Positions 24,338 to 60,111 of a stretch of DNA of 64,000 nt are shown one piece after another. The stretch's first letter is position 1; each line of letters opens with the position of its first letter. Origin of the DNA: Anthoceros angustus (lineage: Eukaryota > Plantae > Anthocerotophyta); assembly GCA_010909165.1 (NCBI GenBank), contig MU008169.1, positions 806,001-870,000 on the forward strand, written 5' to 3'. A model generated the notes under the pieces. It did not search any database. It was not told where the DNA came from and was given only the letters and a program-made list of their open reading frames with translations. Both the position numbers and the translations under genes were made by a program.

Positions 24338-27300
24338 TGTTGAAGTTGTAGCACTCAAGCCCTTAGGGCACGTTTCGTTTTTAAGCCTGAAAACCTGAAC
24401 CGACATTTGGGCGAAGCGTCACGAACTGGCAGTTTTTCTCCTCCTTTACATTCTGGCTCAGCCCTGATACACTACATTGTGTTCTCTACCATGAATTGCC
24501 CATCTATCGGATTCTGATGCATCTGTCGCACCATAATCGTCACATGGTATCAGAGCCAGTGATGGTATCATGCCCAGCCAACGGCGCACAGCTAGGCAGG
24601 CAGACCTTCAAGAATGGAAAAGAATTAATCGTGAGAATTCATACCTCAAGGAGGCAAGAGAAAACCTGTGGGCTTACGCATGGATTCGAACCTGTTCCGT
24701 GCTTCTGATCATAGGAGAAGAACTTTCACTACGTGGCTTTTACGACCCACAGGAGTATGATTGGGCCTACGTAGAAATCTCCTTTCTGTTCATAGAAAGG
24801 CCACCAAACTCACAATGATAAGGCAATTCACCACCACGGTTGAAGTTCACACACCACTCAACCTGCACGAATAAGAGAAACATTGATCACGAGCCTACAA
24901 AACCTATGTAGGCAACATAGCCTTCTATCGTGCCCGGCTCCTCAGACAACCTGTACATTCTTCCTCCACAATCGAAATAGAGGAATTTCAAAATCAGATA
25001 ATAGAATTTACAAGGTCTAGAAACACACACAAAACTAATTCTAACACCTGCAGAAACTATACGTGATCACTCTCCAAATACACATCAATTGCCTCCTTAG
25101 AGCATACCATCAGCCATTAAACACTCCATCAAATTAAAAAGTCCCAACATGTCTACCTCCCACCTTTCCTGTCCAAGGAGGACAAATTTGATTTGGCCAA
25201 GCAACACAATTTCCCCATCCGGAAATTTCGTATCACTAATATCCGAAGAGCGCAAGCTCAGGGTTACGAGTGAGTCTGAAATCCACCCATCCCCATCCCC
25301 AACCCTACGAGGAACACAACTAGAGAAAGATCAATGGGAGGACAATAATCAAGCAAAAACGTGCTCATGCAGGTATGAAACAAGGCAATGCAATAGTGGA
25401 GGGACAACAAGATTAAGCATGGACCCACCATGAGATATATGATATGATATCATGCATACTATACATACAATCAAAAGCTACCACCTTGAATGTCAAGGTG
25501 ACCATGTTGATCACCATGCCATGGTTTTCCAGTGGATCATTAAATTCGTGCTCTTGGATTCAATATCCCCGAGGAGCTCCTAGAAGCAATCGCTATCCAC
25601 ATTACCGAATCATGGGTGAGCGTACAAAGCCTCCAAGGCATCAAACCTCTAATCAACAAGTTATACAATGCCATCAAGAAGACGCCGGAAAGTTTTGCTC
25701 ATGCCGGAGAGCCATCCTCCGGCTTTCGAGGGAGACAGAGGCCGAGACAGAGGAAACATGAGAGGCATCAGAGGACGTGGCACTTACTCAACCCGTGGCG
25801 AGGGATCTACAACCGCTTGGAAGCCCGAGGGTACCGTGCAAAATACCGCCACATCTATGAAGAATGCTGCTTAGCATCCTCCAATTCCCATGAGACATCA
25901 GCCCCATTGGCCCTAACCATGCGAAACACACTAAAGGCTTTCCTTGCCCAAATTAGCCACAATCCTCCGGGCACTAGCACACCATTAGCACTAGTAGCCT
26001 CTTGCTTATCGCCCAAGGCGAACACTGTATATTGATTCGGAGCCTCGCAAAGACATGACCCCCATAGGGAATATTTTACCAAAGTTACACCTACAAAGAC
26101 AACCCAACTTTGTCCCTTGGAGATAACACCAAACATCATATTATGCCATGGCTCCATTGCTCCAGCAACCACACTCCACCGCAGATTTCGGATGTCCTCT
26201 TAGTTCCCGGACTAACAAAAACCTCTTTTCCGCACGAAAAGTTGATCAAGATGTTATGTTTGTTTTGGCAATGGCCATCTGCCATTGAAACCCCTCAAGG
26301 CGATCTAATTGCCACCGGTGATCTTAAAATGATGACCTATATCATCTAAGGGTTAGTCACCCTTCCTCTCTAACAGCAGTACAGAAACAAAATCGGACCT
26401 TCCTTTGGCACGCTTGGGCATATGCATTTGCAGAAAATGAAGGAGATGATCAACACACAAGCAGCCCATGGCATTACTCTCACGAATTGAGGACGTACTT
26501 GTGAAGCTGTTCCCTCGAAAAGCCATCGCCCTTTTCCTAAGGCATCCAACACAAGAGCTACCAAGCGCCTTCAACTAGTACACTCGACATCCGGGCCTTT
26601 CAATAAATCACTCTTTGGTTATACCTACTTCATGCTTATTATCGATGATTTCACTCGCTTTACTATATATATATCAAGACCAAGGCCCAAGCATTTCCAT
26701 GCTTCAAGGAATACAAGACACAGTCGAAAAGCAAGGCGATACCTTATTATGCCTTAGATCCGACGGTGGAGAATATGGCTCTACTCAATTCACCCACTGC
26801 AAGGAACATGGTATCAACCGTCAAATTACCACTCCTTACACATCCCAACAAAATGGGGTTGAAAGAATGAATCGGACCATCCAGAATGTGGTTTGGCAAT
26901 GATGATTCATGCCCGCCTTCCTAAAACCTATTGGCGGAGGCAATGCGCATGCCTACATCGCACCACAACCTCTTCTCTCTCACTGGCACTCTGAAGCTGA
27001 CAGTCAAGCCCGATCTCTCTACACGGATTTTGGTTCCCCTGCCTATGCCCACATTCCTAAGGCAATCCAACCAAACTAGATCACAAGGCATGAAATTTCG
27101 CTTCATTGGCTTTACCGACGGATCAAAGGTTACAAAATTATCCACCCTCAAACACACAAAGTCACCCACTCAGACGTCACCTTCCTCGAGGACATCCACC
27201 ACACCGGGGAGCCCCAACCAACCTAGATGATGATGAAGATGGCTCTGTGGACTTTTCTCGCACCGGTCCTAACCTTCCCAACCCGCTCCCCAGACGACAC

Positions 27301-29781
27301 GCCCATGTCTCAGCCTCGCCACACCGCACCTCCTCGCCATTCCCTTCACCAGGACACACCACAAACCATCTTTTCGACTCGCCGATCCACTCTCAAACAC
27401 CTCAGCTCCGGCTCACGCCCTTCGATTGAGAGGGGACGGCACGCCGACACGATCAAATCGAGAAATCGTGAATCGCAGTAAAGCAGGGACATTTTCGACT
27501 CAAATTTTCGATCCGCCCCAACTCCGGCGAATCTCCACAACACCTCTCCGCACCTACACGCCGACGCGCTCAAGACCAATGTAATCCACAACCCGACGCA
27601 CTGCGCAGCTCTCAATCCCGGTCCTTGGCCTTCAACGCGCCCCGATTCCCGCTCATGCTCGATCGGCCACACACCGGATCGATTTAGCGAACAATGACCC
27701 GAGCATCGCCTCGGCGCCGGGATCGGCAAGTGACATTGAGTTTTCACAATATGCTCTTGACCCCGACTTTCAAAAACGACGGGCACCTCAACAACAAGTA
27801 GGCATTTATCTGATTTTCTAATTACAATACTCCCGATATGCAACATATAAATGCCTGAAGCCGAGGAAACTCTAGACCCTTATTTCAAAATGTGCAAGAG
27901 GACATCCCACAATCACCGCCACTAACCAGCCTAGGCGTAGACAATCTCACCGCTCCAATGTGTAAAATATAGATATTCTCCTACTAATCAAGGATCCCAA
28001 GAGCAATTTAGCATATTGTCTTAATGCTATAGATCGCTTTGTCCTCGCCACTACCAGAGGCCATCATGCCCACAAAAGGAACACGAAACAAGCAATCGTG
28101 TCGAACTAGAATCCCTACAAGCCAATAAAACTTGGACTTTAACTACTCTACCTAAGGATAGACAACTTGTGGGATCTAAGTGGACCTTCAAGATCAAATT
28201 AAATGCCGATGGTAGCATAGAGAGATACAAGGCTAGATTAGTAGCCAAGGATACTCTCAAAAATATGGTTTTGATTATGATGAAACTTTTAGTCCCGTAC
28301 TTAAGATAACCTCACTTAGGATCCTCCTAGCCTTAGCATCTCACCATGACTATGAGCTAATGCAACTTGACATTAAGACAGCTTTATTATATGGAGATCT
28401 CGACCACACCATCTACATGGAGATTCTCAAGGGATATATGTTAAGGATAGGACAAAGTACAATGCATGCCTACTATTAAAGTCCTTATACGGACTTAAGA
28501 GTGCTATGAAATGGTATTTTAAGCTAGACGCCAGCCTTAAGGAACTAGGTTTCACTAAGTTAAACTCGATAATAATATCTACATTAAAAGATCAAGCATT
28601 TACTTTATCGTCTTAGGGGTATAATGAGACGATATAGTTCTTATGTCCAACACTAAGGCCATACTAGAAGAGACCATCTATGCTAGCTAAGCGTTTCTCC
28701 ATGACCACTTGTAGAGAGCTTTCCTTTGCTTGGGCATTTAGGTCTTAAGGGATAGAAAGGCTAGAAGCATTCTCATTCACCAATCAAAATATATTCAAGA
28801 AATCTTAACAAAGTTTAAGATGTTAGAATCTAGGCCTATCTCAACACCCATGGAAATGAACCTTAAGCTAAGCAAAGAGGTGGATCAACAGGACAACAGT
28901 GACACTACTCCTCCTCCTTATTCCTCACCGTAGGTAGTCTTATGTACCTTATGGTTTGCACTGCACTGCATCCTATCTGGGAGCCTTGTCACAATTCCTA
29001 TCAGCTCCTACTCAAGCTCATTGGAAGGTCATAAGAGGATATTTAGATACCTAAGAGCAACTTGGACTTAGGGTTGCTCTACTACATATCAAACAAGGAG
29101 AACCTCTACAACTTGAAGGTTATAGTGATGCCGAGGCACAACATTGATGATAGAAAAGCACAAGCAACGATATTTATTGGGAGGCACGAACAAGTGGAGT
29201 AGTACAAAGTAGTTGCACTCACCAACCGAGGTCGAGTATTGCTGCTGACTCACGCATGCAAGGATGGACTCGCAACTTCTCCAACTTTCGAGTTAGGCGA
29301 GACCCGAGGATTCCTAGGCCGCCCTCGTGATAATCAAAGTGCCATCTCACTCACCTATAACCCAAGTTCCATGCTCGAACAAAGCACGTGGAGGTACAAT
29401 TTCATTTCATAAGGCAAGTGGTTGAAGAAGGCAAGTTTGCGTTCTATTGTCCAACAGAGCACATGGTAGCGGATGTGCTTACAAAGCACTTAGCTCTATC
29501 AAACATCAACAACACGTGAAGAACATGGGACTTAGAAGGTCTCGGACATTAGCTTCAATTCTTAGCAATGTAAAAGTGCATAGCCTAAGGACTAGATGCT
29601 AAGTGGGAGTGTTGAAGTTGTAGCACTCAAGCCCTTAGGGCACGCGTTTTAAACTGAACCGACATTTGGGCGCACGAACGCGCTTATTCTCCTCCTTTAC
29701 CTCACGATACACTACATTGTGTTCTCTACCATGAATTGCCTATCTATCGGATTACGATGCATCCGAACCATAATCGCCATG
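24338..29781 (+). mobile_element. Ty1/Copia LTR retrotransposon, full-length but frameshifted
   Basis: LTRs 24338-24544 (TGT..ACA) and 29610-~29781; PBS TGGTATCAGAGCC 24545-24557; PPT AAGTGGGAG 29601-29609; TSD GGTAC at 24333-24337 and 29782-29786. Domain order is protease (~26030), integrase (LRSDGGEY, TPYTSQQNG), RT (ERYKARLVAKG, LDIKTAFLYG), RNase H (DNQSAI, VADVLTKAL). Confidence 0.96.
24545..24557 (+). promoter_or_regulatory. Primer-binding site complementary to the initiator tRNA-Met 3' end
   Basis: TGGTATCAGAGCC immediately after the 5' LTR. Confidence 0.95.
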
Positions 29782-35589: not shown

Positions 35590-36620
35590 GATGATGGCCG
35601 CAGTGCTCAGGATCCTTTGCTTGTCAGAAATGACTTGAAGCTTAGTCGGCCAGACTAGGTGACTCCTGATGGCAGCACAGAGGGAGCCAGCCAGTCCACT
35701 GTCGCAGCTCTCTCTGGAAGGTTTTTTCAAGATTCTGCGGGCGGGCTGCTTGCTGCAAAGGAGTTGCAGGTTTGAATGGGAACAACCGTAGCCAACACCA
35801 CGGTTCGGGCAAAAATGAAGGGCTTAGCCTGAGGCCTAGTCACAGTCCAGGCTTCCATGTTGGAGGCTGAGACTATAAATCCAACCAAGGGTCCGAAGAC
35901 CCCAGACCCAGTCCGAGTCCAGGGTCTAAGTTTGGAGGCTGAGCCTCTATCTCCGACCTACGATCCGAATACTCCAGACCCAGTCCGAGTCCAGGCTCCA
36001 ACTTTCCTCCAAGACCTTCCTGACGAGGAAAGGCACTGTGTGTCAAGAGAGCACAGATATGTCAGACACAGAGACCAAGGCCAAGGCCATGGAAGATGAG
36101 ATGGCACAACTCTGGAGGCAGGCTCTTGGCTGAAGCGCTTGGAGAGGTAACATCAACTTTGGTTTTCTTTAGCGGTTCTATGGGTACCCTTGTAAAGCAC
36201 ATTTCCGCGTTGCGTACTATTCATAACAGTAAACCTGCATTGTAGTCAACCTGCAGCTATTGAAACGGAGCAACAGCAGAAAGCCGATCGGCTGTATACA
36301 TGACTATGAACGGAATTCAGAATGTGGTCAAGTGTGCTGTCTCTGTGGTCATGTGAGAGCTGCAATGAATGTGGAGTTCTTCGCTCCTCTCCGGGCTGTG
36401 AGCACCACTGGTGTCCATTCGTATCTCCTGCGGCCGTGAGCTTCACTTTGACATCTTTTGTAGAGCTGCTTCACTCTGTTTGAAGGCAATGCGTGGCCAT
36501 GTTTGCAGGCCAAGAGAAGACAGCAACGCCAAAATCCTCGAGGATAAGCATATTTTGGAGGAAGATGAAAATATTCAGCAACCTAGGCCCTTGTACGTCA
36601 GAGCCTGAAGAAAGGCCCAC
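35590..36620 (+). pseudogene. CLSY/DRD1-like 5' region with two introns and the Cys/His exon
   Basis: EDEMAQLW; CIHDYERNSECGQVCCLCGHV (C-x-H...C-x2-C motif upstream of the CLSY/DRD1 ATPase); 72-bp repeat units. Confidence 0.82.
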
Positions 36621-38419
36621 TGAGTGACTTTAGCCTGTTCAGGTTCTGACCTACAAGGGCCTAGGAACCTGAGTCACGTCGACTTTGGCCTCTTGGTGAT
36701 CTCAATGCTATAATAGAGAAGGCAATGCTGCTGAGTGCTCTGGTGCTTTGGTTAAGTGGGGTTTAAAGACAATTGGGGAGCTCTGGAACCTCTTGTTGCT
36801 GTTATACTTCTTGAGGGATGCTGCCATGGGCAGGTGTGGCCATGGTATCAGCTGAGGAGGTCACATGCACTACCCCTAGGCATTCAGACCAACTCCTAGA
36901 ACTTGGAAGCTTGAACTCGGTATAAGCGGTGAGCTCACGTGACGGTACTGACACTCGGACTGTTTTTCAGATGTCGGTTGAACCTGCCCGGCCCTTGCAT
37001 CGTGCATCGTAAATTTGGGCGGAACACATTTTGTGCTGGATGTGGTGTTCCCGCTAAAGTTCGTGAATCACTTCTGTTCCGTTTCTGGAATCTTTTGAAA
37101 GTGAGTGAACTGGATCACACCTTGGGGTGCGTCTGAGCTAAGTTTTGCTTGTGAGGTACCAGCATGAGGCATTTTACCCTATCTTGACGGTGGCACGTAT
37201 CAACCTGCACCTGAGCTCGCAATGTTGCTTGCTAACCTTCCCTTCTCCTCGACTCCCATCCTTGTTGCCTGTGGCAGACATCAACAGGAGGTTTTGAAGC
37301 AGCGGAAGCAGTTATCCGTTACAATGCTCGTCCCAAGGACACCAGCTTATTTGGCACGTGTTGACAATGACATCCAATGGCCGCACTGCAATGCAGGATT
37401 TAACCCCGGAATTTCCACGCCTTTTAACTTACCACATGGTGTCAGGTCCGGCGCCAAGGACATTACTTCTTGTTGCCATTGCGCGTTCTCTGCTGCACTG
37501 TGGCCCATCTGCTGCTTCTGTCGAGATCTGCTGCCCCAGCTCGCTCGATTGCTCTTGCGTTGCACCAGTGCAGCTCCTGATCTTGCTCTTGCTCTTACTC
37601 TTGTGCCTCCTGAGGCTGCAGGCCTGGGCTGTAATTGCTGCCCAGAGCTGCCGATTGTGACTGCTCAGACACCTGGCTCTCACTGCTCCATTTTCTTGCT
37701 TCCGCTTGTGTGCTGGATTGTGGGTTGCCTTTTTACCCTGCTTGGCTTCTTGCTTCCGCTTGTGTGCTGTCCAGATTGTGGGTTGCTTATTTCTTATCCA
37801 GTCTGTTTTCTTGCTTCCGCTTCTGTGCTGGATTGTGGGTTGCTTATTTCTTTCCTACTTGTCACAAGGCAATCCTTCCTGTTGTGCAAATTCTATGCTC
37901 CCAGGTCCGGGGTGGTGTTTTTGTACCTGCCAGTGTCTCCTCGTTTTGGCTGTGCCTTCTCTCTTCCTGCCTTGCTGTCGGTTTTCTGCTGGGTAGGGAG
38001 GAGTTTGTCTATAAGGGAAGGGAGGGATCTGTGGGAGGTTGGGTCCAGATGCATTACCATTCCTGGAGCCAGCCTCAGGGTATTTGCACGGGGCTCATGG
38101 ATTTGTCCTCCTCCTCCTCATGTCATCACCTGCCCTTGCTCAGGGAATCAGCAGGCTGGCCAGGCCTGGACCCCGGCGCCTGCAATGCAGGGGCTGCTGC
38201 CAGCAAGATAGACGATCAGCCAGACCTGGACGTGGCGCTGTGGGACACAACAGGATTGACTGGTGCGTGCATTTCTCAGCCTGTTGATTTGGCTTTTTGT
38301 TCAGGCCAGGTGGTGAGCAGGGCTGACTCAGTTGCTTGAGCAGGTTCGAGAGCAGGGACGGAAGAGGTCTCACGAAGGTGGAATTGATCACCTGAGAAAG
38401 AAATTAAGACTTGCCAGAA

Positions 38420-46486: not shown

Positions 46487-47690
46487 GACATTTTGTACGC
46501 AATGAAGATACCAATGTTCTGCAGGCCTTGAAGAAGGTGAAGACAATGAACAGGGTGATACTGAGTGGCACTTTATTTCAGAATAACTTCATGGAGTTAT
46601 ACCAGATACTTAGTTTTGTGAAGCCGGAATTTTTGGGGAATGATCCAGAGTTTTCACAAAAGCGGATGGAACTGGAGAAGGAGCAGGAGAATGACAGACT
46701 GCGCAATGGTGGCATGATAACCCAGGCAATGGTAGACAAATGGGACAAAGTGGGAAGAATTTTGGAAGTCCAAATGTAAATCTATCACGAGGACTGCTTG
46801 TAGCGACGCTATCGATGAGGGTATCCAGAACATTCGAAATCTGACTTCCTTTGTAGACTCTCATGAAGGTGCTGACCTGAAGTCTCTTCCAGGACTACAG
46901 GAGTTTGTTGTTCATCTGAAGCTACAGCCTTTGCAAGCGGACCTGGTGGCAAAAGTGCAGTCAAAGTGCAGCGGAAAAGTTCCAAGTTTAGCCTTACTTC
47001 AGGTACAACATTGGTGACTGTTCTCCCTCTGCCCTGACGAGTACCGGGACACCTCTGAGTTTCCTGATCTCGACGGAACAGCCTCGACTCCCGGTAAGGG
47101 TGTGGAGCTGGGTTATGCAGATCCTATCTCTTTGCGACAAGGCAGGAGAGAAGCTTATTATTTTCAGCAGTATGCTCAAACCTCTGGAATATATACAGGA
47201 GGTCCTACAAAAGCACAAGAGCTGGGCCTTGGGAGACAAAGTTCTGCTTGTTAATGGAAAGCCACCCAAGAAATGGTACCATCAAGAGGTTCAATGACAA
47301 GAACGACCCTTCGAGGGTTCTTCTGGCCTCTATCAAGGCTTGTGGAGAAGGTGTAAACCTTACTGCAGCCTCAGGATCATACTGTTGGAACCCGTCTTTA
47401 ACCCCAGCGTCACTCGCCAAGCGGTGAGCCGGGCTTTCCGCGTTGGCCAAGAGAAGAAGGTGATTGCGTATCACCTGGTTGCAGCAAATACGACCGAGCC
47501 AGAAAATCGCCGCCAAGCCTTAGACAAGGAATGGATATCCGTCAATCTCTTCGGGACTGAAGGTATCGTTGACAACAGCGACCAGGAAGTGAGTGATCCA
47601 GTTAACTGTGCAGATGAGTTCTTTCAGTCCAATGCTGTAAGGAGACACCTGGACAGGCTATATATCGCCAGAAGGCACTGTCCACTTTAG
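46487..47690 (+). pseudogene. Sense CLSY/DRD1-like fragment (fold-back arm)
   Basis: ORFs 46528, 47100 and 47340. Confidence 0.93.
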
Positions 47691-50060
47691 CCTTGTGGTG
47701 AAGGCAATGCTGACGTCTCCGCTGCTTTGGTTAATTGAGGTTGAAAGAAAATGGGAGCTCCCAAACCTCTGTTGCTGTCATACGTCTTGCGTCTTGAGGA
47801 TGCTGTTATGGGCAGATGTGGCCAGCTCGTTCCAGCCTTCACCTCAGCCCTAACTGTGAAGCCCGAGCTTGGTACCAGCTGATGAAAGGTCACAGGCACT
47901 GCACTGCCAAGCAGACCAACTCCCTGCTGGAAGGAGCTCAGTACAACCGGTGAGCTCACATGAATTTGACTGGACTTGCACTCAGCCTATTCACAGGCAC
48001 TGCACTGGCAAGCTATGGCTAAGCCATTGAGCATGGAATGGCCTGCTGGGCATTCGCTATGCATAGGAAGCGTGGGGCATGCCTGAGTTGCTGCAGGAGG
48101 AGGCCCCACATATTTCGTCCTGTGCGTAGGGTTCTTTTCAGCTGGTTGCTCGCTAACTGTGATCCGCAAGGCACTGGATCCGACTGCTTTCAATCGCTGG
48201 CCTTATGGAAGCAAGTAACACTGCATACCAGATTTATTATCTGAAATCGATAAAGGGGTTGCCACGTTGTAGAACTTTTGAGTACGCAAGTTGCATTGGC
48301 CGAATCGAACCCCGGACATTGTGTGTACATTGTTCTAGTGGACATTGTTCTACAACAACAACAACAACAACTTTATTTATACAACAACAACAACTTTATT
48401 TATGTCCATGACGCTGTTGCACTACGTGATTACCAGTGCAAATAATAATTTACAGGTCATTGTGTGTATAAAATTATTAAACGTTTTTATTTTATTAAAA
48501 TCACTTTAAGAATGCATGCTATATTTGTTCTATGATATACTCATAAATTTCAAGAGATTTCATGCTGTATTTATCCTATAGTATGCTTACTTACAATTTC
48601 AAGAGGTTGCATGCTATATTTATCCTATAATATACTCACAAATTTCAAGAGCTTAAAATAGGCCGGCCTTCCTTTAACTGAACCCATCACATGTCGAAGC
48701 TTGATACAATGCATATGTGGTTTTGGGCCAACTCACTCTAATCTAATTGTTTTCTTGATCATATTATCTTTATTTTATTAAATCATACGTAATTGTAAAT
48801 TACAAAAGACATACCACTTTCTCCAACTTCTCCTCTCGAATGGTGGACTTGCTATCATGTGACTCAATTTGTTATTTTCCTTGCGAAGACTCAAGATTCC
48901 TTGACGCTCTACTTGAAGGTCGCTTCAATCAATGGTTTCGATTAGGCCGGGACACCACTAGTCAAAATTGAAGTTTCTATAGCATGTTCTTCAATCTCTA
49001 AAGCAGGTCAAAATTGAAGTTTCTATTGCATGTTCTTCAATCTCGAACAAACAAGTCCGTAATATTAGAGATTGTGCTTGAATGTGACAAAAGAATGGTA
49101 GATCTATTTGGTTGAGATTCCAACATATCTTATTATATGCTCAAAGCTTTCACGCCTTCATTTACAAAACTCATGCCACATAAGATCTCATTGACATGAC
49201 TTTTGTATATAAATTGGATGAGACCTAGTGCATCTTGAATATATGTTAGGAATCTCACAAAGCTGGTCCTCTTTGTCAAATTGTTCATAGCATAACCTTG
49301 AATATTGGGTGATTACTTGCTTAGAAAAAAAATATTGATTCAAAACTTTAGTTTGGACTTGTAGTACTCTATCGAATACATGTGTAGGCTTTAGATATTT
49401 CCAAGTTGAAGGCAAACAAATGCTATGCTATACCAACGGTCTTCTATCGTTACCCAAAGTGAAATTAGAGGATCCATCATGACATTCTCTTGCGGCTTTG
49501 CGTAAAATCAAAGGTAAACCAATCAAGTTGGCCCAGTCGGAGTTGCGAGGGCCGAGGCGAAGACTTTCTTCCTGCCTCTCTTGTCCGATATGGAAACCCA
49601 ACTTAGGATTCGCTCTCATAAATCCTCTTGCAGAATTCTTGTTGTAAATATTATTTCACGAAAAAAATAAACTCATGTTTAGATGTCATTCCTTGAAGGG
49701 AGGACTCAAATATAGGCTTTAAATATTTATAATATTGATATCTAGTAATTGAAATATTTTAAATATCCAAACAAATAGCTCATTGAATAGGTGAATGTTT
49801 GAATCTTCCAATTTTGTCCGGTTCTCTCACTAACTCTATTCATTATATAAAATTATTAAAATAAAAATATATTGAATGTACATAGTTTTATAGTAACAAA
49901 TATCTATCGATAAACTTTTTAAGTGATCGGAACCCTCAAAGGATGAGTTTAGGGAGATGAGAAGTGGGTGAATCAAAATTCTTACTATAATTGATAAGTT
50001 TGATGAGATAAAAAATGTGGAAAAAAAACAACATAGAGCAATTCTCCATCTAGGGAGGAT

Positions 50061-51388
50061 GAGAAAAGTGTCTTGATCGTTAGCTACAACATCGCTAGCC
50101 GGATCATTCACAAGGAGGGAGCCCAGCATGATGAACTTAGCAATATTCTAGTGGGGACTCCTGATCTGGTAGTCTTGGATGAAGGACATTTTGTACGCAA
50201 CGAAGATACCAATGTCCTGCAGGCCTTGAAGAAGGTGAAGACAATGAACAGGGTGATACTGAGTGGCACTTTATTTCAGAATAACTTCATGGAGTTATAC
50301 CAGATACTTAGTTTCGTGAAGCCGGAATTTTTGGGGAATGATCCAGGGTTTTCACAAAAGCGGATGGAACTGGAGAAGGAGCAGGAGAATGACAGACTGC
50401 GCAATGGTGGCATGATAACCCAGGCAATGGTAGACAAATGGGACAAAGTGGGAAGAATTTTGGAAGTCCAAATGTAAATCTATCACGAGGACTGCATGCG
50501 ACGCTATCCATGAGGGTATCCAGAACATTCGAAATCTGACTTCCTTTGTAGACTCTCATGAAGGTGCTGACCTGAAGTCTCTTCCAGGACTACAGGAGTT
50601 TGTTGTTCATCTGAAGCTACAGCCTTTGCAAGCGGACCTGGTGGCAAAAGTGCAGTCAAAGTGTGGCGGTAAAAGTTCCAAGTTTAGCCTCACATCAGGT
50701 ACAACATTGGTGACTGTTCACCCGTCTCTCTGTCCTGACGAATACCAGGACACCTCTGAGTTTCCTGATCTCGACGGAACAGCCTCGACTCCCGGTAAGG
50801 GTGTGAAAGCTGATTTCGTTTGGAGATCCTATCTCTTTGTGACAAGGCAGGAGAAAAGCTTATTATTTTCAGCAGTATGCTCAAACCTCTGGAATATATA
50901 CAGGAGGTGCTACAAAAGCACAAGAGCTGGGCCTCGGGAGACAAAGTTCTGCTTGTTAATGGCAAAGCCACCCTAAGAAATGGTACCATCAAGAGGTTCA
51001 ATGACAAGAACGACCCTTCGAGGGTTCTTCTGGCCTCTATCAAGGCTTGTGGAGAAGGTGTAAACCTTACTGCAGCCTCAGGATTATACTGTTGGAACCC
51101 GTCTTTAACCCCAGCGTCACTCGCCAAGCGGTGAGCCGGGCTTTCCGCGTTGGCCAAGAGAAGAAGGTGATTGCGTATCACCTGGTTGCAGCAAATACGA
51201 CCGAGCCAGAAAATCGCCGCCAAGCCTTAGACAAGGAATGGATATCCGTCAATCTCTTCGGGACTGAAGGTATCGTTGACAACAGCGACCAGGAAGTGAG
51301 TGATCCAGTTAACTGTGCAGATGAGTTCTTTCAGTCCAATGCTGTAAGGAGACACCTGGACAGGCTATATATCGCCAGAAGGCACTGA
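50061..51388 (+). pseudogene. Young CLSY/DRD1-like C-terminal two-thirds; with its 3' flank it repeats at 60103-62113
   Basis: ORFs 50073, 50626, 50820 and 51047. Confidence 0.93.
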
Positions 51389-52165
51389 CAACTTTAGCCT
51401 TGTGGTGAAGGCAATGCTGCTGAGGTCTCTGGTGCTTTGGTTAAATGAGGGTTGAAAGAAAATGGGAGCTCCCAAACCTCTGTTGCTGTCATACATATTG
51501 CGTCTTGAGGGATGCTGCTATCGGCAGATGTGGCCAGCTAGTTCCAGCCTTCACCTCAGCCCTAACTGTGATGCCGAGCTTGGTACCAGCTGATGAAAGG
51601 TCACAGGCACTGCACTGAAGCAGACCAACTCCCTGGAAGCTGAGCTCAGTACAACCGGTGAGCTCACATGAATTTGACTGGACTTGCACTCAGCCTATTC
51701 ACAGGCACTGCACTGGCAAGCTGGCTAAGCCATTGTGCATGGAATGGCTGGGCATAAGCTATGCATAGGAAGCGTGGGGCATGCCTGAGTTGCTGCAGGA
51801 GGAGGCCCCACATATTTCGTCCTGTGCGTAGGGTTCTTTTCAGCTGGTTGCTCGCTAACTGTGATCCGCAAGGCACTGGATCCGACTGCTTTCAATCGCT
51901 GGCGTTATGGAAGCAAGTAACACAGGATACCAGATTTATTATCTGAAATCGATAAAATGGCAACGTTGTAGAACTTTTGAGTACGCAAGTTGCATTGGCC
52001 GAATCGAACCCCGGACATTGTGTGTACATTGTTCTAGTGGACATTGTTCTACAACAACAACAACAACAACTTTATTTATACAACAACAACAACAACTTTA
52101 TTTATGTCCACTAAGGATGGAAGAACCATCATGGGACAGAGATAGTACAGCGAAAAGAGGTTTAA

Positions 52166-53562
52166 ATACCGAGTTCAAGCTTCCAAGTTCTAGGAGTTGG
52201 TCTGAATGCCTAGGGGTAGTGCATGTGACCTCCTCAGCTGATACCATGGCCACACCTGCCCATGGCAGCATCCCTCAAGAAGTATAACAGCAACAAGAGG
52301 TTCCAGAGCTCCCCAATTGTCTTTAAACCCCCACTTAACCAAAGCACCAGAGCACTCAGCAGCATTGCCTTCTCTATTATAGCATTGAGATCACCAAGAG
52401 GCCAAAGTCGACGTGACTCAGGTTCCTAGGCCCTTGTAGGTCAGAACCTGAACAGGCTAAAGTCACTCAGTGGGCCTTTCTTCAGGCTCTGACGTACAAG
52501 GGCCTAGGTTGCTGAATATTTTCATCTTCCTCCAAAATATGCTTATCCTCGAGGATTTTGGCGTTGCTGTCTTCTCTTGGCCTGCAAACATGGCCACGCA
52601 TTGCCTTCAAACAGAGTGAAGCAGCTCTACAAAAGATGTCAAAGTGAAGCTCACGGCCGCAGGAGATACGAATGGACACCAGTGGTGCTCACAGCCCGGA
52701 GAGGAGCGAAGAACTCCACATTCATTGCAGCTCTCACATGACCACAGAGACAGCACACTTGACCACATTCTGAATTCCGTTCATAGTCATGTATACAGCC
52801 GATCGGCTTTCTGCTGTTGCTCCGTTTCAATAGCTGCAGGTTGACTACAATGCAGGTTTACTGTTATGAATAGTACGCAACGCGGAAATGTGCTTTACAA
52901 GGGTACCCATAGAACCGCTAAAGAAACCAAAGTTGATGTTACCTCTCCAAGCGCTTCAGCCAAGAGCCTGCCTCCAGAGTTGTGCCATCTCATATTCCTT
53001 GGCCCAGGGCTCTGTGTCTGACATATCTGTGCTCTCTTGACACACAGTGCCTTTCCTCGTCGGGAAGGTCTTCCCTTGGATGGAGATGTAGTTTCAGGCT
53101 CCAAACTTGGAGCCTGAACTCGGACTGGGTCTGGAGTATTCGGATCGTAGGTCGGAGATAGAGGCTCAGCCTCCAAACTTAGACCCTGGACTCGGACTGG
53201 GTCTGGGGTCTTCGGACCCTAGGTTGGAGATGTAGGCTCAGCCTCCAAGCTTGCAGCCTGGACTCGCACTGGGTATGGAGTCATCGGACCCTTGGTTGGA
53301 TTTATAGTCTCAGCCTCCAACATGGAAGCCTGGACTGTGACTAGGCCTCGGGCTAAGCCCTTCATTTTTGCCCGAACCGTGGTGTTGGCTACGGTTGTTC
53401 CCATTCAAACCTGCAACTCCTTTGCAGCAAGCAGCCCGCCCGCAGAATCTTGAAAAAACCTTCCAGAGAGAGCTGCGACAGTGGACTGGCTGGCTCCCTC
53501 TGTGCTGCCATCAGGAGTCACCTAGTCTGGCCGACTAAGCTTCAAGTCATTTCTGACAAGCA
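52166..53562 (-). repeat. Inverted copy of 35618-36923 (antisense CLSY 5' exons)
   Basis: Identical mirror ORFs 36411+/52482- and 36246-/52644+. Confidence 0.95.
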
Positions 53563-53808
53563 GGTTTCTCTTTACACCGAGAATGATGATACATATAATC
53601 AAATGACGCACAGATGTTCATCCCTGCCCTGGGCACTAGATTCCTACTCTGCTCGTGAAAATGTGGTGACATGTGAGCGTAGTTGGCGGTGATAAGGTAA
53701 CGGTCAAGATCCAATCTTAGATCCCAAGAGCTGATGCCCTTGATTGGCGGGCAGCCTCTCGGCTGGGATCAGGAAGTACCTGGTTTCGCTGAAAAGGAGC
53801 CAAGTCAT

Positions 53809-56697
53809 TTGTGACAAGGCTCCCAGATAGGATGCAGTGCAGTGCAAACCATAAGGTACATAAGACTACCTACGGTGAGGAATAAGGAGGAGGAGTAGTG
53901 TCACTGTTGTCCTGTTGATCCACCTCTTTGCTTAGCTTAAGGTTCATTTCCATGGGTGTTGAGATAGGCCTAGATTCTAACATCTTAAACTTTGTTAAGA
54001 TTTCTTGAATATATTTTGATTGGTGAATGAGAATGCTTCTAGCCTTTCTATCCCTTAAGACCTAAATGCCCAAGCAAAGGAAAGCTCTCTACAAGTGGTC
54101 ATGGAGAAACGCTTAGCTAGCATAGATGGTCTCTTCTAGTATGGCCTTAGTGTTGGACATAAGAACTATATCGTCTCATTATACCCCTAAGACGATAAAG
54201 TAAATGCTTGATCTTTTAATGTAGATATTATTATCGAGTTTAACTTAGTGAAACCTAGTTCCTTAAGGCTGGCGTCTAGCTTAAAATACCATTTCATAGC
54301 ACTCTTAAGTCCGTATAAGGACTTTAATAGTAGGCATGCATTGTACTTTGTCCTATCCTTAACATATATCCCTTGAGAATCTCCATGTAGATGGTGTGGT
54401 CGAGATCTCCATATAATAAAGCTGTCTTAATGTCAAGTTGCATTAGCTCATAGTCATGGTGAGATGCTAAGGCTAGGAGGATCCTAAGTGAGGTTATCTT
54501 AAGTACGGGACTAAAAGTTTCATCATAATCAAAACCATATTTTTGAGAGTATCCTTGGCTACTAATCTAGCCTTGTATCTCTCTATGCTACCATCGGCAT
54601 TTAATTTGATCTTGAAGGTCCACTTAGATCCCACAAGTTGTCTATCCTTAGGTAGAGTAGTTAAAGTCCAAGTTTTATTGGCTTGTAGGGATTCTAGTTC
54701 GACACGATTGCTTGTTTCGTGTTCCTTTTGTGGGCATGATGGCCTCTGGTAGTGGCGAGGACAAAGCGATCTATAGCATTAAGACAATATGCTAAATTGC
54801 TCTTGGGATCCTTGATTAGTAGGAGAATATCTATATTTTACACATTGGAGCGGTGAGATTGTCTACGCCTAGGCTGGTTAGTGGCGGTGATTGTGGGATG
54901 TCCTCTTGCACATTTTGAAATAAGGGTCTAGAGTTTCCTCGGCTTCAGGCATTTATATGTTGCATATCGGGAGTATTGTAATTAGAAAATCAGATAAATG
55001 CCTACTTGTTGTTGAGGTGCCCGTCGTTTTTGAAAGTCGGGGTCAAGAGCATATTGTGAAAACTCAATGTCACTTGCCGATCCCGGCGCCGAGGCGATGC
55101 TCGGGTCATTGTTCGCTAAATCGATCCGGTGTGTGGCCGATCGAGCATGAGCGGGAATCGGGGCGCGTTGAAGGCCAAGGACCGGGATTGAGAGCTGCGC
55201 AGTGCGTCGGGTTGTGGATTACATTGGTCTTGAGCGCGTCGGCGTGTAGGTGCGGAGAGGTGTTGTGGAGATTCGCCGGAGTTGGGGCGGATCGAAAATT
55301 TGAGTCGAAAATGTCCCTGCTTTACTGCGATTCACGATTTCTCGATTTGATCGTGTCGGCGTGCCGTCCCCTCTCAATCGAAGGGCGTGAGCCGGAGCTG
55401 AGGTGTTTGAGAGTGGATCGGCGAGTCGAAAAGATGGTTTGTGGTGTGTCCTGGTGAAGGGAATGGCGAGGAGGTGCGGTGTGGCGAGGCTGAGACATGG
55501 GCGTGTCGTCTGGGGAGCGGGTTGGGAAGGTTAGGACCGGTGCGAGAAAAGTCCACAGAGCCATCTTCATCATCATCTAGGTTGGTTGGGGCTCCCCGGT
55601 GTGGTGGATGTCCTCGAGGAAGGTGACGTCTGAGTGGGTGACTTTGTGTGTTTGAGGGTGGATAATTTTGTAACCTTTGATCCGTCGGTAAAGCCAATGA
55701 AGCGAAATTTCATGCCTTGTGATCTAGTTTGGTTGGATTGCCTTAGGAATGTGGGCATAGGCAGGGGAACCAAAATCCGTGTAGAGAGATCGGGCTTGAC
55801 TGTCAGCTTCAGAGTGCCAGTGAGAGAGAAGAGGTTGTGGTGCGATGTAGGCATGCGCATTGCCTCCGCCAATAGGTTTTAGGAAGGCGGGCATGAATCA
55901 TCATTGCCAAACCACATTCTGGATGGTCCGATTCATTCTTTCAACCCCATTTTGTTGGGATGTGTAAGGAGTGGTAATTTGACGGTTGATACCATGTTCC
56001 TTGCAGTGGGTGAATTGAGTAGAGCCATATTCTCCACCGTCGGATCTAAGGCATAATAAGGTATCGCCTTGCTTTTCGACTGTGTCTTGTATTCCTTGAA
56101 GCATGGAAATGCTTGGGCCTTGGTCTTGATATATATATAGTAAAGCGAGTGAAATCATCGATAATAAGCATGAAGTAGGTATAACCAAAGAGTGATTTAT
56201 TGAAAGGCCCGGATGTCGAGTGTACTAGTTGAAGGCGCTTGGTAGCTCTTGTGTTGGATGCCTTAGGAAAAGGGCGATGGCTTTTCGAGGGAACAGCTTC
56301 ACAAGTACGTCCTCAATTCGTGAGAGTAATGCCATGGGCTGCTTGTGTGTTGATCATCTCCTTCATTTTCTGCAAATGCATATGCCCAAGCGTGCCAAAG
56401 GAAGGTCCGATTTTGTTTCTGTACTGCTGTTAGAGAGGAAGGGTGACTAACCCTTAGATGATATAGGTCATCATTTTAAGATCACCGGTGGCAATTAGAT
56501 CGCCTTGAGGGGTTTTCAATGGCAGATGGCCATTGCCAAAACAAACATAACATCTTGATCAACTTTTCGTGCGGAAAAGAGGTTTTTGTTAGTCCGGGAA
56601 CTAAGAGGACATCCGAAATCTGCGGTGGAGTGTGGTTGCTGGAGCAATGGAGCCATGGCATAATATGATGTTTGGTGTTATCTCCAAGGGACAAAGT
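53809..56697 (-). mobile_element. Inverted internal Copia segment (reverse complement of 26107-28994), no LTRs
   Basis: Identical mirror ORFs, e.g. 27346-/54957+ and 26615+/55901-. Confidence 0.96.
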
Positions 56698-57193
56698 GGG
56701 AAGAATTTTGGAAGTCCAAATGTAAATCTATCACGAGGACTGCATGTAGCTATCCATGAGGGTATCCAGAACATTCGAAATCTGACTTCCTTTGTAGACT
56801 CTCATGAAGGTGCTGACCTGAAGTCTCTTCCAGGACTACAGGAGTTTGTTGTTCATCTGAAGCTACAGCCTTTGCAAGCGGACCTGGTGGCAAAAGTGCA
56901 GTCAAAGTGTGGCGGTAAAGTTCCAAGTTTAGCCTCACATCAGGTACAACATTGGTGACTGTTCACCCGTCTCTCTGTCCTGACGAATACCAGGACACCT
57001 CTGAGTTTCCTGATCTCGACGGAACAGCCTCGACTCCCGGTAAGGGTGTGAAAGCTGATTTCGTTTTGCAGATCCTATCTCTTTGTGACAAGGCAGGAGA
57101 AAAGCTTATTATTTTCAGCAGTATGCTCAAACCTCTGGAATATATACAGGAGGTGCTACAAAAGCACAAGAGCTGGGCCTGGGAGACAAAGTT
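56688..57193 (+). pseudogene. CLSY/DRD1-like mid-helicase piece embedded in inverted Copia
   Basis: RNLTSFVDSHEGAD..VHPSLCP..GEKLIIFS. Confidence 0.93.
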
Positions 57194-57344
57194 GGGTTGT
57201 CTTTGTAGGTGTAACTTTGGTAAAATATTCCCTATGGGGGTCATGTCTTTGCGAGGCTCCGAATCAATATACAGTGTTCGCCTTGGGCGATAAGCAAGAG
57301 GCTACTAGTGCTAATGGTGTGCTAGTGCCCGGAGGATTGTGGCT
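57185..57344 (-). mobile_element. Inverted Copia piece (reverse complement of 25955-26114)
   Basis: Direct sequence match, 160 bp. Confidence 0.93.
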
Positions 57345-57769
57345 CCAAAAGTGATGGTGGAACCCTGGAAGGATGAGTTCCATAGATGGAATGTGAGGAT
57401 ATCAAGATTCTCACTGTATGACAAGTCCACTGAGACACACGATGTGGAGAAACGTCGTAGAGAGATTCTTCATCAATGGGAGGCAGAGAAAAGTGTCTTG
57501 ATCGTTAGCTACAACATCGCTAGCCGGATCATTCACAAGGAGGAGCACAACATGATGAACTTAGCAATATTCTAGTGGGGACTCCTGATCTGGTAGTCTT
57601 GGATGAAGGACATTTTGTACGCAATGAAGATACCAATGTCCTGCAGGCCTTGAAGAAGGTGAAGACAATGAACAGGGTGATACTGAGTGGCACTTTATTT
57701 CAGAATAACTTCATGGAGTTATACCAGATACTTAGTTTCGTGAAGCCGGAATTTTTGGGGAATGATCCA
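57335..57769 (+). pseudogene. CLSY/DRD1-like ATPase motif Ia-III piece
   Basis: VAPKVMVEPWKDEF..LDEGH..SGTLFQNNF. Confidence 0.93.
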
Positions 57770-58338
57770 CTGGAAAACCATGGCATGGTGATCAACATGG
57801 TCACCTTGACATTCAAGGTGGTAGCTTTTGATTGTATGTATAGTATGCATGATATCATATCATATATCTCATGGTGGGTCCATGCTTAATCTTGTTGTCC
57901 CTCCACTATTGCATTGCCTTGTTTCATACCTGCATGAGCACGTTTTTGCTTGATTATTGTCCTCCCATTGATCTTTCTCTAGTTGTGTTCCTCGTAGGGT
58001 TGGGGATGGGGATGGTGGATTTCAGACTCACTCGTAACCCTGAGCTTGCGCTCTTCGGATATTAGTGATACGAAATTTCCGGATGGGGAAATTGTGTTGC
58101 TTGGCCAAATCAAATTTGTCCTCCTTGGACAGGAAAGGTGGGAGGTAGACATGTTGGGACTTTTTAATTTGATGGAGTGTTTAATGGCTGATGGTATGCT
58201 CTAAGGAGGCAATTGATGTGTATTTGGAGAGTGATCACGTATAGTTTCTGCAGGTGTTAGAATTAGTTTTGTGTGTGTTTCTAGACCTTGTAAATTCTAT
58301 TATCTGATTTTGAAATTCCTCTATTTCGATTGTGGAGG
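57761..58338 (-). mobile_element. Inverted Copia piece (reverse complement of 24963-25541)
   Basis: Direct sequence match. Confidence 0.93.
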
Positions 58339-58379
58339 TGCTTCACTCTGTTTGAAGGAGTTTGTGGCCATGTCTGCAG

Positions 58380-59919
58380 GCCAAGGGAAGACAAAAACGC
58401 AGCGATGAGCATGAGGATTTCTTGGAGGAAGATAAGATATTCAGCAACCTCGGCCCTTGTAGGTCAGAAGCTGAAGAAAGGCCAATTCAAAGGCTGAAGG
58501 TGAAGATTCCTCCTCATTTCATGCCCACGATGAAGGAACATCAGGTGAAAGGATTTCAATTCCTTGTCAAGTCTCTGGATGGCAGAGGAGGATGTATTTT
58601 TCAACATGCTCCAGGAACAGGAAAAACGTTCTTGATGATAGCCTTTGTGAAAGGCTTACTCACTACCTATCCGGCCAAGAAGGTGCTGATTGTGGCTCCA
58701 AAAGTGATGGTGGAACCCTGGAAGGATGAGTTCCATAGATGGAATGTGAGGGATATCAAGATTCTTACTGTGTATGACAAGTCCACTGAGACACACGATG
58801 TGGAGAAACGTCGTAGAGAGATTCTTCATCAATGGGAGGCAGAGAAAAGTGTCTTGATCGTTAGCTACAACATCGCTAGCCGGATCATTCACAAGGAGGG
58901 AGCCCAGCATGATGAACTTAGCAATATTCTAGTGGGGACTCCTGATCTGGTAGTCTTGGATGAAGGACATTTTGTACGCAACGAAGATACCAATGTCCTG
59001 CAGGCCTTGAAGAAGGTGAAGACAATGAACAGGGTGATACTGAGTGGCACTTTATTTCAGAATAACTTCATGGAGTTATACCAGATACTTAGTTTCGTGA
59101 AGCCGGAATTTTTGGGGAATGATCCAGGGTTTTCACAAAAGCGGATGGAACTGGAGAAGGAGCAGGAGAATGACAGACTGCGCAATGGTGGCATGATAAC
59201 CCAGGCAATGGTAGACAAATGGGACAAAGTGGGGAAGAATTTTTGGAAGTCCAAATGTAAATCTATCACGAGGACTGCATGTAGCGACGCTATCCATGAG
59301 GGTATCCAGAACATTCGAAATCTGACTTCCTTTGTAGACTCTCATGAAGGTGCTGACCTGAAGTCTCTTCCAGGACTACAGGAGTTTGTTGTTCATCTGA
59401 AGCTACAGCCTTTGCAAGCGGACCTGGTGGCAAAAGTGCAGTCAAAGTGTGGCGGTAAAAGTTCCAAGTTTAGCCTCACATCAGGTACAACATTGGTGAC
59501 TGTTCACCCGTCTCTCTGTCCTGACGAATACCGGGACACCTCTGAGTTTCCTGATCTCGACGGAACAGCCTCGACTCCCGGTAAGGGTGTGAAAGCTGAT
59601 TTCGTTTTGGAGATCCTATCTCTTTGTGACAAGGCAGGAGAAAAGCTTATTATTTTCAGCAGTATGCTCAAACCTCTGGAATATATACAGGAGGTGCTAC
59701 AAAAGCACAAGAGCTGGGCCTGGGAGACAAAGTTCTGCTTGTTAATGGCAAAGCCACCCTAAGAAATGGTACCATCAAGAGGTTCAATGACAAGAACGAC
59801 CCTTCGAGGGTTCTTCTGGCCTCTATCAAGGCTTGTGGAGAAGGTGTAAACCTTACTGCAGCCTCCAGGATTATACTGTTGGAACCCGTCTTTAACCCCA
59901 GCGTCACTCGCCAAGCGGT
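58380..59919 (+). pseudogene. Main helicase exon of a CLASSY/DRD1-family SNF2 remodeler, truncated inside motif VI
   Basis: 466-aa ORF 58362-59762: MKEHQVKGFQFL, GGCIFQHAPGTGKTF, VAPK..W..EF, LDEGH, SGTLFQNNF, VHPSL, GVKADFV. One 1-nt frameshift near 59720. Continues LLASIKACGEGVNLTAASR..FNPSVTRQAV, then Copia sequence. Confidence 0.94.
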
Positions 59920-60111
59920 TGTAGATCCCTCGCCACGGGTTGAGTAAGTGCCACGTCCTCTGATGCCTCTCATGTTTCCTCTGTCTCGGCCTCTGTCTCC
60001 CTCGAAAGCCGGAGGATGGCTCTCCGGCATGAGCAAAACTTTCCGGCGTCTTCTTGATGGCATTGTATAACTTGTTGATTAGAGGTTTGATGCCTTGGAG
60101 GCTTTGTACGC
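59911..60111 (-). mobile_element. Inverted Copia piece (reverse complement of 25620-25820)
   Basis: Direct sequence match, 201 bp. Confidence 0.93.

Follow-up and report, generated by a model that had tools for sequence, protein, structure and literature searches.

The 64-kb stretch of the Anthoceros angustus assembly that was analysed (the window) contains a mirror-image structure of about 35 kb. Three arms, A (24963–28994), B (35618–36923) and C (42999–46408), are followed by the mirror copies C' (46487–50072), B' (52166–53562) and A' (53809–60111). The order A-B-C, C'-B'-A' reported in an earlier note on this DNA is confirmed, with every arm at the coordinates given there, and the mirror copies have hardly any substitutions relative to their sources. 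The note had described a nested, interrupted palindrome; the mirror order stands, but the right half (46487–62113) reads as a series of 11 or more template switches. Stretches copied in antisense from C, B and A take turns there with sense pieces derived from a CLSY-like gene, and every template that could be identified is found within about 35 kb.

CLSY/DRD1-like genes in the window

In each central arm, the inner part is coding sequence for the 3' half of an SNF2 ATPase of CLSY/DRD1-like type. The earlier estimate of about 1.2 kb of such coding sequence proved accurate, as 1.2–1.3 kb per arm (45229–46544, minus strand; 46483–47666, plus strand) match SNF2_N and Helicase_C. Elsewhere in the window, SNF2_N (E = 1.3e-34, ORF 58362–59762) and Helicase_C (E = 2e-13, ORF 60617–61321) occur in the expected domain order, and tblastn with CLASSY-like proteins placed the two lobes in the copies C, C', Y and S described below. 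The named relatives are CLASSY 1-, 3- or 4-like proteins, unnamed or generic SNF2 proteins, or proteins with JGI RAD54-like labels (E down to 4.5e-45, 26–34% identity); no other plant SNF2 subfamily name was found among these relatives, in a search whose length window left out proteins of DRD1 length. The best solved structure is ATRX, which belongs to the same Rad54-like group. A Cys/His motif upstream of the ATPase (C-x-H ... G-x-x-C-x-x-C-G), which we take to define the CLSY/DRD1 subfamily and which is a weak test, is present in B (ORF 36233–36436) and, with one cysteine changed, in 42182–42439. The same pattern occurs in two matches named CLASSY 1 (P0043 and P0062).

In their combination of SNF2_N and Helicase_C, the window genes are like CLASSY1–4 and DRD1 of Arabidopsis RdDM (PMC8752594, PMC10533338). 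They further resemble CLASSY in that their nearest named relatives are CLASSY proteins and that the upstream Cys motif is as in CLASSY1-named proteins. Unlike the Arabidopsis proteins, the arm copies are broken, and the window copies share only 26–33% identity with them, a comparison that does not separate CLSY from DRD1 orthology. The window contains no intact target gene. At only about 32% identity to angiosperm CLASSY proteins, the gene is CLSY/DRD1-like, and its designation as a core RdDM gene in the earlier note is an inference.

The sense pieces, all on the plus strand, include a 2.1-kb piece, Y (50061–52177), which separates C' from B' and is a copy of the 3' part and flank of an S-type gene; C' is joined to it at a homologous position through a 12-nt shared stretch. 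Two short CLSY-like pieces follow, S1 (56688–57193), with junction overlaps of 13 nt with one mismatch (10 perfect) and of 9 nt, and S2 (57335–57769), with overlaps of 10 and 9 nt. S3 (58330–59919) is a gene body with a 466-residue open frame (58362–59762) that contains SNF2_N, and is probably in its native place; relative to Y it carries a 1-nt frameshift at 59722. S4 (60103–62113) is a 3' part that includes the Helicase_C ORF. Its first 942 nt duplicate the end of S3 (60103–61044 and 58971–59919; 942–949 nt), and the two copies flank a small Copia piece. Fifteen of the 18 indels between Y and S4 are deletions in Y. The C-type gene, with its 3' half at 45025–46488 on the minus strand, differs from the S-type genes by 21 substitutions. 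Because 15 of these 21 fall at codon position 3 and transitions outnumber transversions 14:7, the C- and S-type genes are, as judged from this pattern, true paralogues.

Arms, centre and junctions

Arm A (plus strand), the source of A', is the inner part of a Ty1/copia element. RVT_2 is spread over three frames at 28025–28613 (E = 2.1e-16 and 8.5e-08 at 28025–28476), so that the polyprotein frame is not intact. Upstream of it, an integrase-like stretch (26579–26899) was judged by eye from the translation; here Pfam gives only a weak rve_3 match (E = 0.059, nested ORF 26615–26902) and none at 0.01. A search for LTRs found no direct repeats bounding the element. The RVT_2 match and the integrase-like stretch bear out the earlier assignment to Copia, and on these features A is a dead fragment of a Copia-type element. 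A' had been described as one block; it is inverted Copia as claimed, but comprises four minus-strand pieces lying in the order 4, 3, 1, 2 amid S1–S4: A4' (53809–56700, copied from 26103–28994), A3' (57185–57344, from 25955–26114), A1' (57761–58338, from 24963–25541) and A2' (59911–60111, from 25620–25820, with a 9-nt overlap on each side). Over 3.8 kb, the four pieces differ from A by no substitutions and three 1-nt indels, two of which are in homopolymer runs.

Arm B (plus strand) is an internally deleted CLSY-like mini-copy and the source of B' (minus strand), which shares a 12-nt overlap with Y. The two differ by eight substitutions and seven indels, including a 72-nt indel that equals one additional tandem-repeat unit. 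The earlier reading of B as CLSY 5' exons is correct for its pre-ATPase region, with the Cys motif and the 72-nt tandem repeat, but B continues into the 3' end of the gene, the ATPase core being deleted. Between B' and A4' lies a stretch of 246 nt (53563–53808) that is single-copy in the window.

Arm C (minus strand) contains the 3' half of the C-type gene, followed downstream by a spacer of about 1.9 kb, and takes in part of an old SNF2 fragment, F (42741–43153, minus strand). Its alignment with the inverted copy C' (plus strand) shows about four substitutions and 19 indels of 1–101 nt, and agrees with the earlier description of a central stem of more than 3 kb around a 78-nt loop (46409–46486, minus strand). 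Identity drops to about 77% exactly at 42998/50073, which confirms the arm ends as first given. C' includes stretches of 101, 26 and 32 nt that are absent from C, and a patch of about 120 nt (about 48300–48420) that is identical to the S-type copies. The loop is not adapter: it is gene sequence in the region of SNF2 motif II that continues the C copy, which is native gene sequence up to 46488, while C' begins at 46487. At the fold-back junction, 46482–46488 pairs with 46407–46413 in an imperfect inverted match (6 of 7 nt) with 2 nt of perfect inverted microhomology.

The boundary of the left arm (42998/42999) falls inside F, which is uniformly diverged: it is about 77% identical to the other copies, and to the S-type copies on both sides of the boundary. 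Y matches F up to the 12-nt shared stretch and S3 beyond it. Taken with the uniform divergence of F, this identifies the left arm as the template and the right arm as the copy. To the left of the C block, a stretch of 189 nt (42552–42740), single-copy in the window, adjoins the 5' part of a sense CLSY-like gene (G3, 41020–42551, plus strand). The last 91 nt of this gene part (42461–42551) recur exactly at 58330–58420, and the interval 42552–58329 therefore reads as an insertion into that gene.

Nine mosaic junctions lie beyond the centre: seven in 56688–60111, one at 52166–52177 and the switch from C' to Y at 50061–50072 (12 nt). All have overlaps of 9–13 nt and none is shorter than 9. The eight besides the C'–Y switch have clean overlaps that measure 9, 9, 9, 9, 9, 10, 10 (13 with one mismatch) and 12 nt. 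When the same parents were joined at random, an overlap of 9 nt was reached in 4 of 200,000 trials. The sense gene and the antisense Copia offer about 29 matches of exactly 9 nt, as well as 124 that are 8 nt long and 413 that are 7 nt long; all seven gene–Copia junctions use 9 or 10 nt. The overlap lengths thus show a threshold at 9 nt and little preference for anything longer. Rad51/RecA filaments reject DNA without an 8-nt match, and each further triplet adds only about 30% stability (PMC10903458, PMC6719624). Five further junctions, with overlaps of 6–13 nt, lie outside the palindrome and indicate that the locus has a history of such events.

Origin of the structure

We favour, with a probability of roughly one half, a very recent rearrangement in a cluster where CLSY/DRD1-like SNF2 genes and pseudogenes lie in tandem; one or a few bursts of strand-switching synthesis would have produced the right half. 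The best reading of the event type is a fold-back followed by synthesis of the break-induced replication (BIR) type. A 3' end at 46488, inside the minus-oriented gene copy, would have snapped back on the 7-nt imperfect inverted match 68 nt upstream and used its own strand as template in the reverse direction over 3.4 kb, which would account for C'. At least ten further rounds of dissociation and re-invasion would have followed, at matches of 9–13 nt, alternating between the antisense of ever further upstream sequences (B, then the four Copia pieces) and sense CLSY-like copies (Y, S1, S2 and S4). Synthesis would have re-entered the starting gene 91 nt behind its point of departure, and A2', with the 942–949-nt duplication on its flanks, would be a second excursion. 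The mirror order would thus be the trace of a copying walk rather than a designed palindrome. A recombinase may have assisted: the step-like lower limit of 8–9 nt fits capture by a Rad51-type filament, as in BIR with template switching, and does not fit plain annealing. Several observations count against this walk, among them the indel pattern and the empty searches for an independent copy described below. The absence from C of the 101-, 26- and 32-nt stretches of C' calls for later deletions in C or extra switches, and microhomology of 9–13 nt is longer than usual in reported MMBIR and fold-back junctions.

The centre resembles the fold-back inverted duplications of human constitutional and cancer genomes, which have inverted arms, a short single-copy spacer, 2–8 bp of inverted microhomology at the boundary and, as here, junctions with occasional templated insertions (PMC3907307). 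Those duplications have spacers of 0.8–70 kb and are terminal, whereas the spacer here is 78 nt and the structure is interstitial and continues through at least ten further switches. As in MMBIR/FoSTeS and BIR template switching (PMC2621351), nearby templates are used serially and in either orientation, microhomology is present at every junction, duplications are discontinuous and the original template is regained. The overlaps differ in being longer and step-like (9–13 nt, none below 9 in the mosaic), for which recombinase capture under the 8-nt rule (PMC10903458, PMC6719624) is a better fit than priming by a polymerase only. The walk proposed here would have run through at least 11 switches in a hornwort; we know of no bryophyte case of such serial template switching.

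With so few substitutions between copy and source, the structure must be of very recent origin if it exists at all. That a real CLSY-like cluster and a real Copia element have been overlaid by false joins, through chimeric molecules, of the kind made by strand-displacement amplification, or a consensus or assembly step, and that the palindrome is absent from the plant, is nearly as likely as the copying walk. Besides the scarcity of substitutions, the many small indels between copies (1–6 nt) show a bias towards deletions and frequently fall in homopolymers, and the few substitutions among young copies in the window's left part are rich in transversions (10 transitions to 17 transversions); this resembles long-read consensus noise and points to a poorly supported region. 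C' is also more complete than its apparent source, C. False molecules of the right kind exist, both as chimeras of multiple-displacement amplification, which join nearby segments by short complementary priming within about 10 kb, with intervening deletions (85% inverted, 2–21 nt complementarity; PMC1855051), and as the false inverted-repeat reads that make up 0.2–7% of ligation nanopore libraries (PMC13141652). Against an artefact, the loop is genomic, unlike in nanopore read-through artefacts, so the centre is not a template-complement read-through; amplification chimeras have no lower step in their complementarity, and annealing-driven joins should give a smooth length distribution with many junctions below 9 nt, which are absent here; and one hornwort genome paper reports no amplification (PMC7027989). 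Assemblers join on long overlaps, not on 9–13 nt. To our knowledge, no assembly tool applies a 9-mer rule. Searches for an independent copy of the locus (metagenome scans, exact-match look-ups, and a word search based on the ORF that spans the loop) did not find one. Least probable of all, and hardly credible, is that the block arose by transposon capture or shuffling (Pack-MULE, Helitron or reverse transcription by a retro-element), or that pre-existing repeats gave rise to it through homologous recombination, unequal or inverted, or through breakage-fusion-bridge cycles. Gene fragments are indeed intermixed with a retro-element in a cluster rich in paralogous repeats able to recombine, and the 9–11-bp range recalls Mutator target duplications. 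Yet the short overlaps are common to both parents, which marks them as microhomology rather than as target-site duplications on either side of an insert. The block is not bounded by LTRs or terminal inverted repeats, and the sequences of the junctions and flanks showed no Helitron-type ends. The presence of antisense pieces and intergenic spacer speaks against an RNA intermediate, homologous recombination would place junctions inside long repeats rather than at 9–13 nt, and the interstitial position with a return to the starting gene is unlike breakage-fusion-bridge products.

Potential for hairpin RNA

The earlier note had claimed that read-through of the centre would give double-stranded RNA, and folding agrees insofar as the transcript is predicted to form a long perfect stem (1 kb around the loop, −941.6 kcal/mol, z = −91). 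An Rfam search of the window found nothing. Like Mu killer and other natural hairpin loci, the structure is a partial inverted duplication of a target sequence with a short spacer that could be read from a flanking promoter into a long hairpin RNA. Of the 21-mers in S4 and Y, the sense copies of the 3' half, 55–60% occur in the stem, and likewise of their 24-mers, against about one third for S3; all window copies are broken. The truncated sense gene part at 41.0–42.55 kb points into the structure. These features, and the maize Mu killer locus, an inverted duplication of this kind that reportedly silences in trans, would suit an evolved hairpin-RNA gene whose siRNAs modulate or attack a CLSY-like RdDM remodeller and a Copia family and which selection maintains for that reason. 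We consider such a gene very unlikely. Selection has had no time to act, given the near-absence of substitutions between the arms; instead of being cut down to a target, the arms also contain 2 kb of spacer sequence, a diverged fragment and shuffled pieces of Copia; a copying walk accounts for the structure piece by piece; and conservation was not found in the searches for independent copies. Mu killer is also backed by genetic and small-RNA proof and is directed at a transposon, whereas the would-be target of the present locus includes a silencing-pathway remodeller, and its arms carry much non-target sequence. The proposal of a feedback regulator or conflict locus is accordingly not supported, since near-zero substitutions make the structure, if real, too young for a signature of selection as a feedback regulator.

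The fold-back centre and the chain of 9–13-nt junctions have instead the anatomy of a copying accident, which could nevertheless yield a hairpin RNA against a gene that helps silencing; any such RNA would be a by-product. If the structure were transcribed through its centre, for example from 41.0–42.55 kb, a 3.4-kb hairpin RNA and siRNAs against the CLSY-like paralogues and Copia would be expected. There is a small chance that all of this holds, that is, that the structure is real, is transcribed from the upstream truncated sense gene, and that a single BIR-type accident made a 3.4-kb hairpin whose siRNAs act on CLSY-like RdDM paralogues and a Copia family. The silencing machinery would then have a newly arisen locus directed against itself, observed before its copies had begun to diverge, and the junction rule of this locus, with nothing below 8–9 nt, would expose recombinase-guided template switching in vivo.

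Arrangement and divergence of the mirrored arms

Comparison of the window with itself reproduced the mirror order proposed in the earlier note. Arms A (24963–28994), B (35618–36923) and C (42999–46408) recur in inverted orientation and reversed order as C' (46487–50072), B' (52166–53562) and A' (four pieces, A1' to A4', within 53809–60111), on the other side of a loop at 46409–46486, and the mirror structure is thus confirmed in the sequence. A simple, single-step palindrome was rejected, since A' is shuffled, sense pieces are interleaved and the spacers between the arms measure 6.6 and 6.1 kb in the left half but 0.25 and 2.1 kb in the right.

BLAST identities of 95–100% had hinted at arms of differing age. 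This was rejected because global alignments show all three arm pairs to be essentially undiverged, the differences being indels and tandem-repeat copy number rather than substitutions. A and the four Copia pieces of A' differ by no substitution over 3.8 kb and by three 1-nt indels, two of which are in homopolymer runs; C and C' differ by about four substitutions and 19 indels, and their identity falls to ~77% exactly at 42998/50073. B and B' are separated by eight substitutions and seven indels, including an additional unit of a 72-nt tandem repeat in the pre-ATPase coding part (35860–35995 in B, 1.9 copies; 53073–53336 in B', 3.7 copies), which encodes a Pro/Thr-rich unit.

At the centre, the minus-oriented C copy is native gene sequence up to 46488, with C' starting at 46487, and its last seven bases pair with 46407–46413 at six of seven positions, giving a loop of 68–78 nt. 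Fold-back inverted duplications show this layout, in which a short inverted match accompanies a single-copy spacer (PMC3907307). The predicted fold of 1 kb around the 78-nt loop is a perfect stem (−941.6 kcal/mol, z = −91). Nanopore template-complement read-through was considered as the origin of the centre and rejected, because the loop is genuine gene sequence.

The chain of pieces in the right half and its junctions

From 46487 to 62113, inverted copies (minus strand) alternate with sense pieces (plus strand). C' (minus) is followed by Y (50061–52177, plus), the sense 3' part of an S-type gene, then by B' (minus) and by 246 nt (53563–53808) that, like 42552–42740, have no source within the window. 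Next are A4' (53809–56700, minus; from Copia 26103–28994), the sense CLSY-like piece S1 (56688–57193, plus), A3' (57185–57344, minus; from Copia 25955–26114), a second such sense piece, S2 (57335–57769, plus), A1' (57761–58338, minus; from Copia 24963–25541), the probably native sense gene body S3 (58330–59919, plus), A2' (59911–60111, minus; from Copia 25620–25820) and S4 (60103–62113, plus), the sense 3' part of the gene. Along the chain, the sources of the antisense pieces lie ever further left.

The outer end of C contains an old SNF2 fragment (42741–43153) that is uniformly diverged on either side of the arm boundary, and Y turns from the type of this fragment to S-type at that boundary, which identifies the left arm as the template and the right arm as the copy. 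Residues 42461–42551 and 58330–58420 match exactly; the intervening 15.8 kb reads as a templated insertion into the sense gene, which appears to have been re-entered 91 nt behind the departure point. The A2' excursion is flanked by a 942–949-nt duplication (58971–59919 and 60103–61044). Two sequence types, a few substitutions apart, are represented among the sense pieces of 56688–61044 (S3 with Y, and S2 with S4), while S1 is mixed, having two indels in common with S4 and agreeing with Y at one site. One of the templates of the mosaic was therefore probably a gene copy lying beyond the window.

Eight junctions were checked against both parents and have clean overlaps of 9, 9, 9, 9, 9, 10, 10 and 12 nt, one of the 10-nt overlaps extending to 13 nt with one mismatch; the C'-to-Y switch lies on a 12-nt shared stretch at a homologous position. 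When the same parents were joined at random 200,000 times, four joins reached an overlap of 9 nt. The exact matches available between the sense gene and antisense Copia number ~413 of 7 nt, 124 of 8, 29 of 9, 7 of 10, 2 of 11 and 1 of 12, and the seven gene-Copia junctions have overlaps of 9 nt (five) and 10 nt (two), i.e. a step at 9 nt with almost no preference above it. Priming driven by annealing should yield a smooth distribution of overlap lengths. Rad51/RecA filaments refuse DNA without an 8-nt match and gain ~30% in stability with each further triplet (PMC10903458, PMC6719624); by analogy, the shape of the observed distribution would be that of this 8-nt rule. Five more junctions outside the palindrome, in the left third of the window, have overlaps of 12, 13, 9, 8 and 6 nt, in the same style as those of the palindrome. 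Further SNF2 fragments are also found in 1–24400, together with near-identical tandem duplications (e.g. 5715–7232/7221–8705 and 14919–15697/17260–18036).

Gene and element content

Arm A corresponds to the interior of a Copia-type element, with an integrase-like stretch at 26.6–26.9 kb and RVT_2 at 28.0–28.6 kb spread over three frames; a search for LTRs in A found none. The CLSY/DRD1 coding sequence claimed for the inner stem was borne out, as the inner 1.2–1.3 kb of C and C' encodes a CLSY/DRD1-like SNF2 ATPase in its 3' half, which runs from the region of motif II to Helicase_C, both copies facing outward from the centre. B had been described as CLSY 5' exons. The pre-ATPase region is indeed kept, with a Cys motif also found in two hits named CLASSY 1, but B includes the 3' end of the gene as well and lacks the ATPase core; it is a mini-copy with an internal deletion.

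Within the window, the longest open frame of this family (58362–59762, 466 aa) has angiosperm CLASSY 3/4/1-like proteins as its best named relatives, at only 26–34% identity, and ATRX as its best solved structure. Every protein query was a single open frame. The CLSY-like genes are tied to RdDM by an identity of about 32% with the CLASSY proteins of angiosperms. Across the whole window, over 25 SNF2 fragments with identities of 67–100% form a "graveyard". Between S3 and C (58885–59700 and 45690–46488) there are 21 substitutions, of which 15 fall at codon position 3; 14 are transitions and 7 are transversions. The mostly third-position differences and the 2:1 ratio suggest at least two paralogues under purifying selection until recently, and the C-type and S-type CLSY-like genes are true paralogues. 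Despite this pattern, C contains frameshifting indels, which are common to C'.

Directly upstream of the truncated 5' part of a sense CLSY-like gene (41020–42551), a small inverted SNF2 fragment (40780–40992, minus; ~74% identical to 23246–23459 of another CLSY-like copy) marks an inverted junction of greater age within this cluster. An (ACA)n-containing unit of 23–26 nt, repeated twice, is found 3' of each gene copy, beside a tRNA T-arm-like stretch (48358–48403, 52054–52105 and 61989–62040; also 44700–44740). The unit and the stretch may together be what is left of a SINE-like element; ARAGORN detected no tRNA, and scanning the window for Rfam families and for tRNAs gave no match. At 62700–63992 (minus), an open frame of 430 aa contains a Cys-His motif resembling a zinc knuckle and probably encodes the gag of an LTR retro-element; no Pfam family matches it, and an exact-protein look-up was blank.

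Origin and significance of the structure

The structure is best read as the trace left by a fold-back and a subsequent series of template switches within the CLSY-like gene cluster, and we place the probability of a real, very recent chromosomal event at roughly 0.5. An artefact of sequencing or assembly retains a substantial minority share. Indels far outnumber substitutions among near-identical copies (18 to three between Y and S4, with 15 of the 18 being deletions in Y), many copy-to-copy indels are in homopolymers, some of them common to several copies, and, among the substitutions separating young copies in the left part of the window, transversions outnumber transitions by 17 to 10. This pattern looks like noise left in a long-read consensus where polishing with short reads was not possible. 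Stretches of 101, 26 and 32 nt present in C' are missing from C, and C' has a ~120-nt patch identical to S-type copies; additional switches or subsequent deletions would account for these features, as would consensus mixing. Strand-displacement amplification generates inverted chimeras primed at 2–21 nt (PMC1855051), and ligation nanopore libraries produce false inverted repeats (PMC13141652); one hornwort genome was built with wtdbg and Pilon from nanopore reads of ligation libraries and no amplification (PMC7027989). As a conjecture, the 9-nt joins could stem from 9-bp overlaps of the Tn5 type or from a consensus step with small k. Searches for an independent copy were all blank and are thus uninformative: a related-locus search with the S3 open frame found none on metagenome contigs, a 30-mer across the loop/C' junction had no exact match on such contigs, and neither an exact-protein look-up of the S3 frame nor a word search with a 151-aa loop-spanning frame returned a match.

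The hairpin-RNA idea of the earlier note is physically sound, but, as judged from sequence, only a possible consequence of the structure. The stem is perfect, the truncated part of the sense gene points into it, and 21-mers common to the stem account for 55–60% of S4 and Y, the 3'-half sense copies, and about one third of S3; an intact target, however, is absent from the window. That the structure is a selected hairpin regulator is improbable, since the near-absence of substitutions between the copies leaves no room for selection, and transposon capture, homologous recombination or breakage-fusion-bridge is the least probable origin.

If the structure is an artefact, read-level checks would be needed for every gene fusion, scrambled gene or recent duplication called from this assembly. 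If the chromosomal event is real, the 9-nt step would be rare in vivo evidence that a recombinase, and not plain annealing, chooses templates in serial switching. One replication accident could then create a hairpin-RNA locus against a silencing-pathway gene, and the locus would provide a natural test, in a land plant of an early-diverging lineage, for silencing of RdDM remodellers through the very pathway in which they act.
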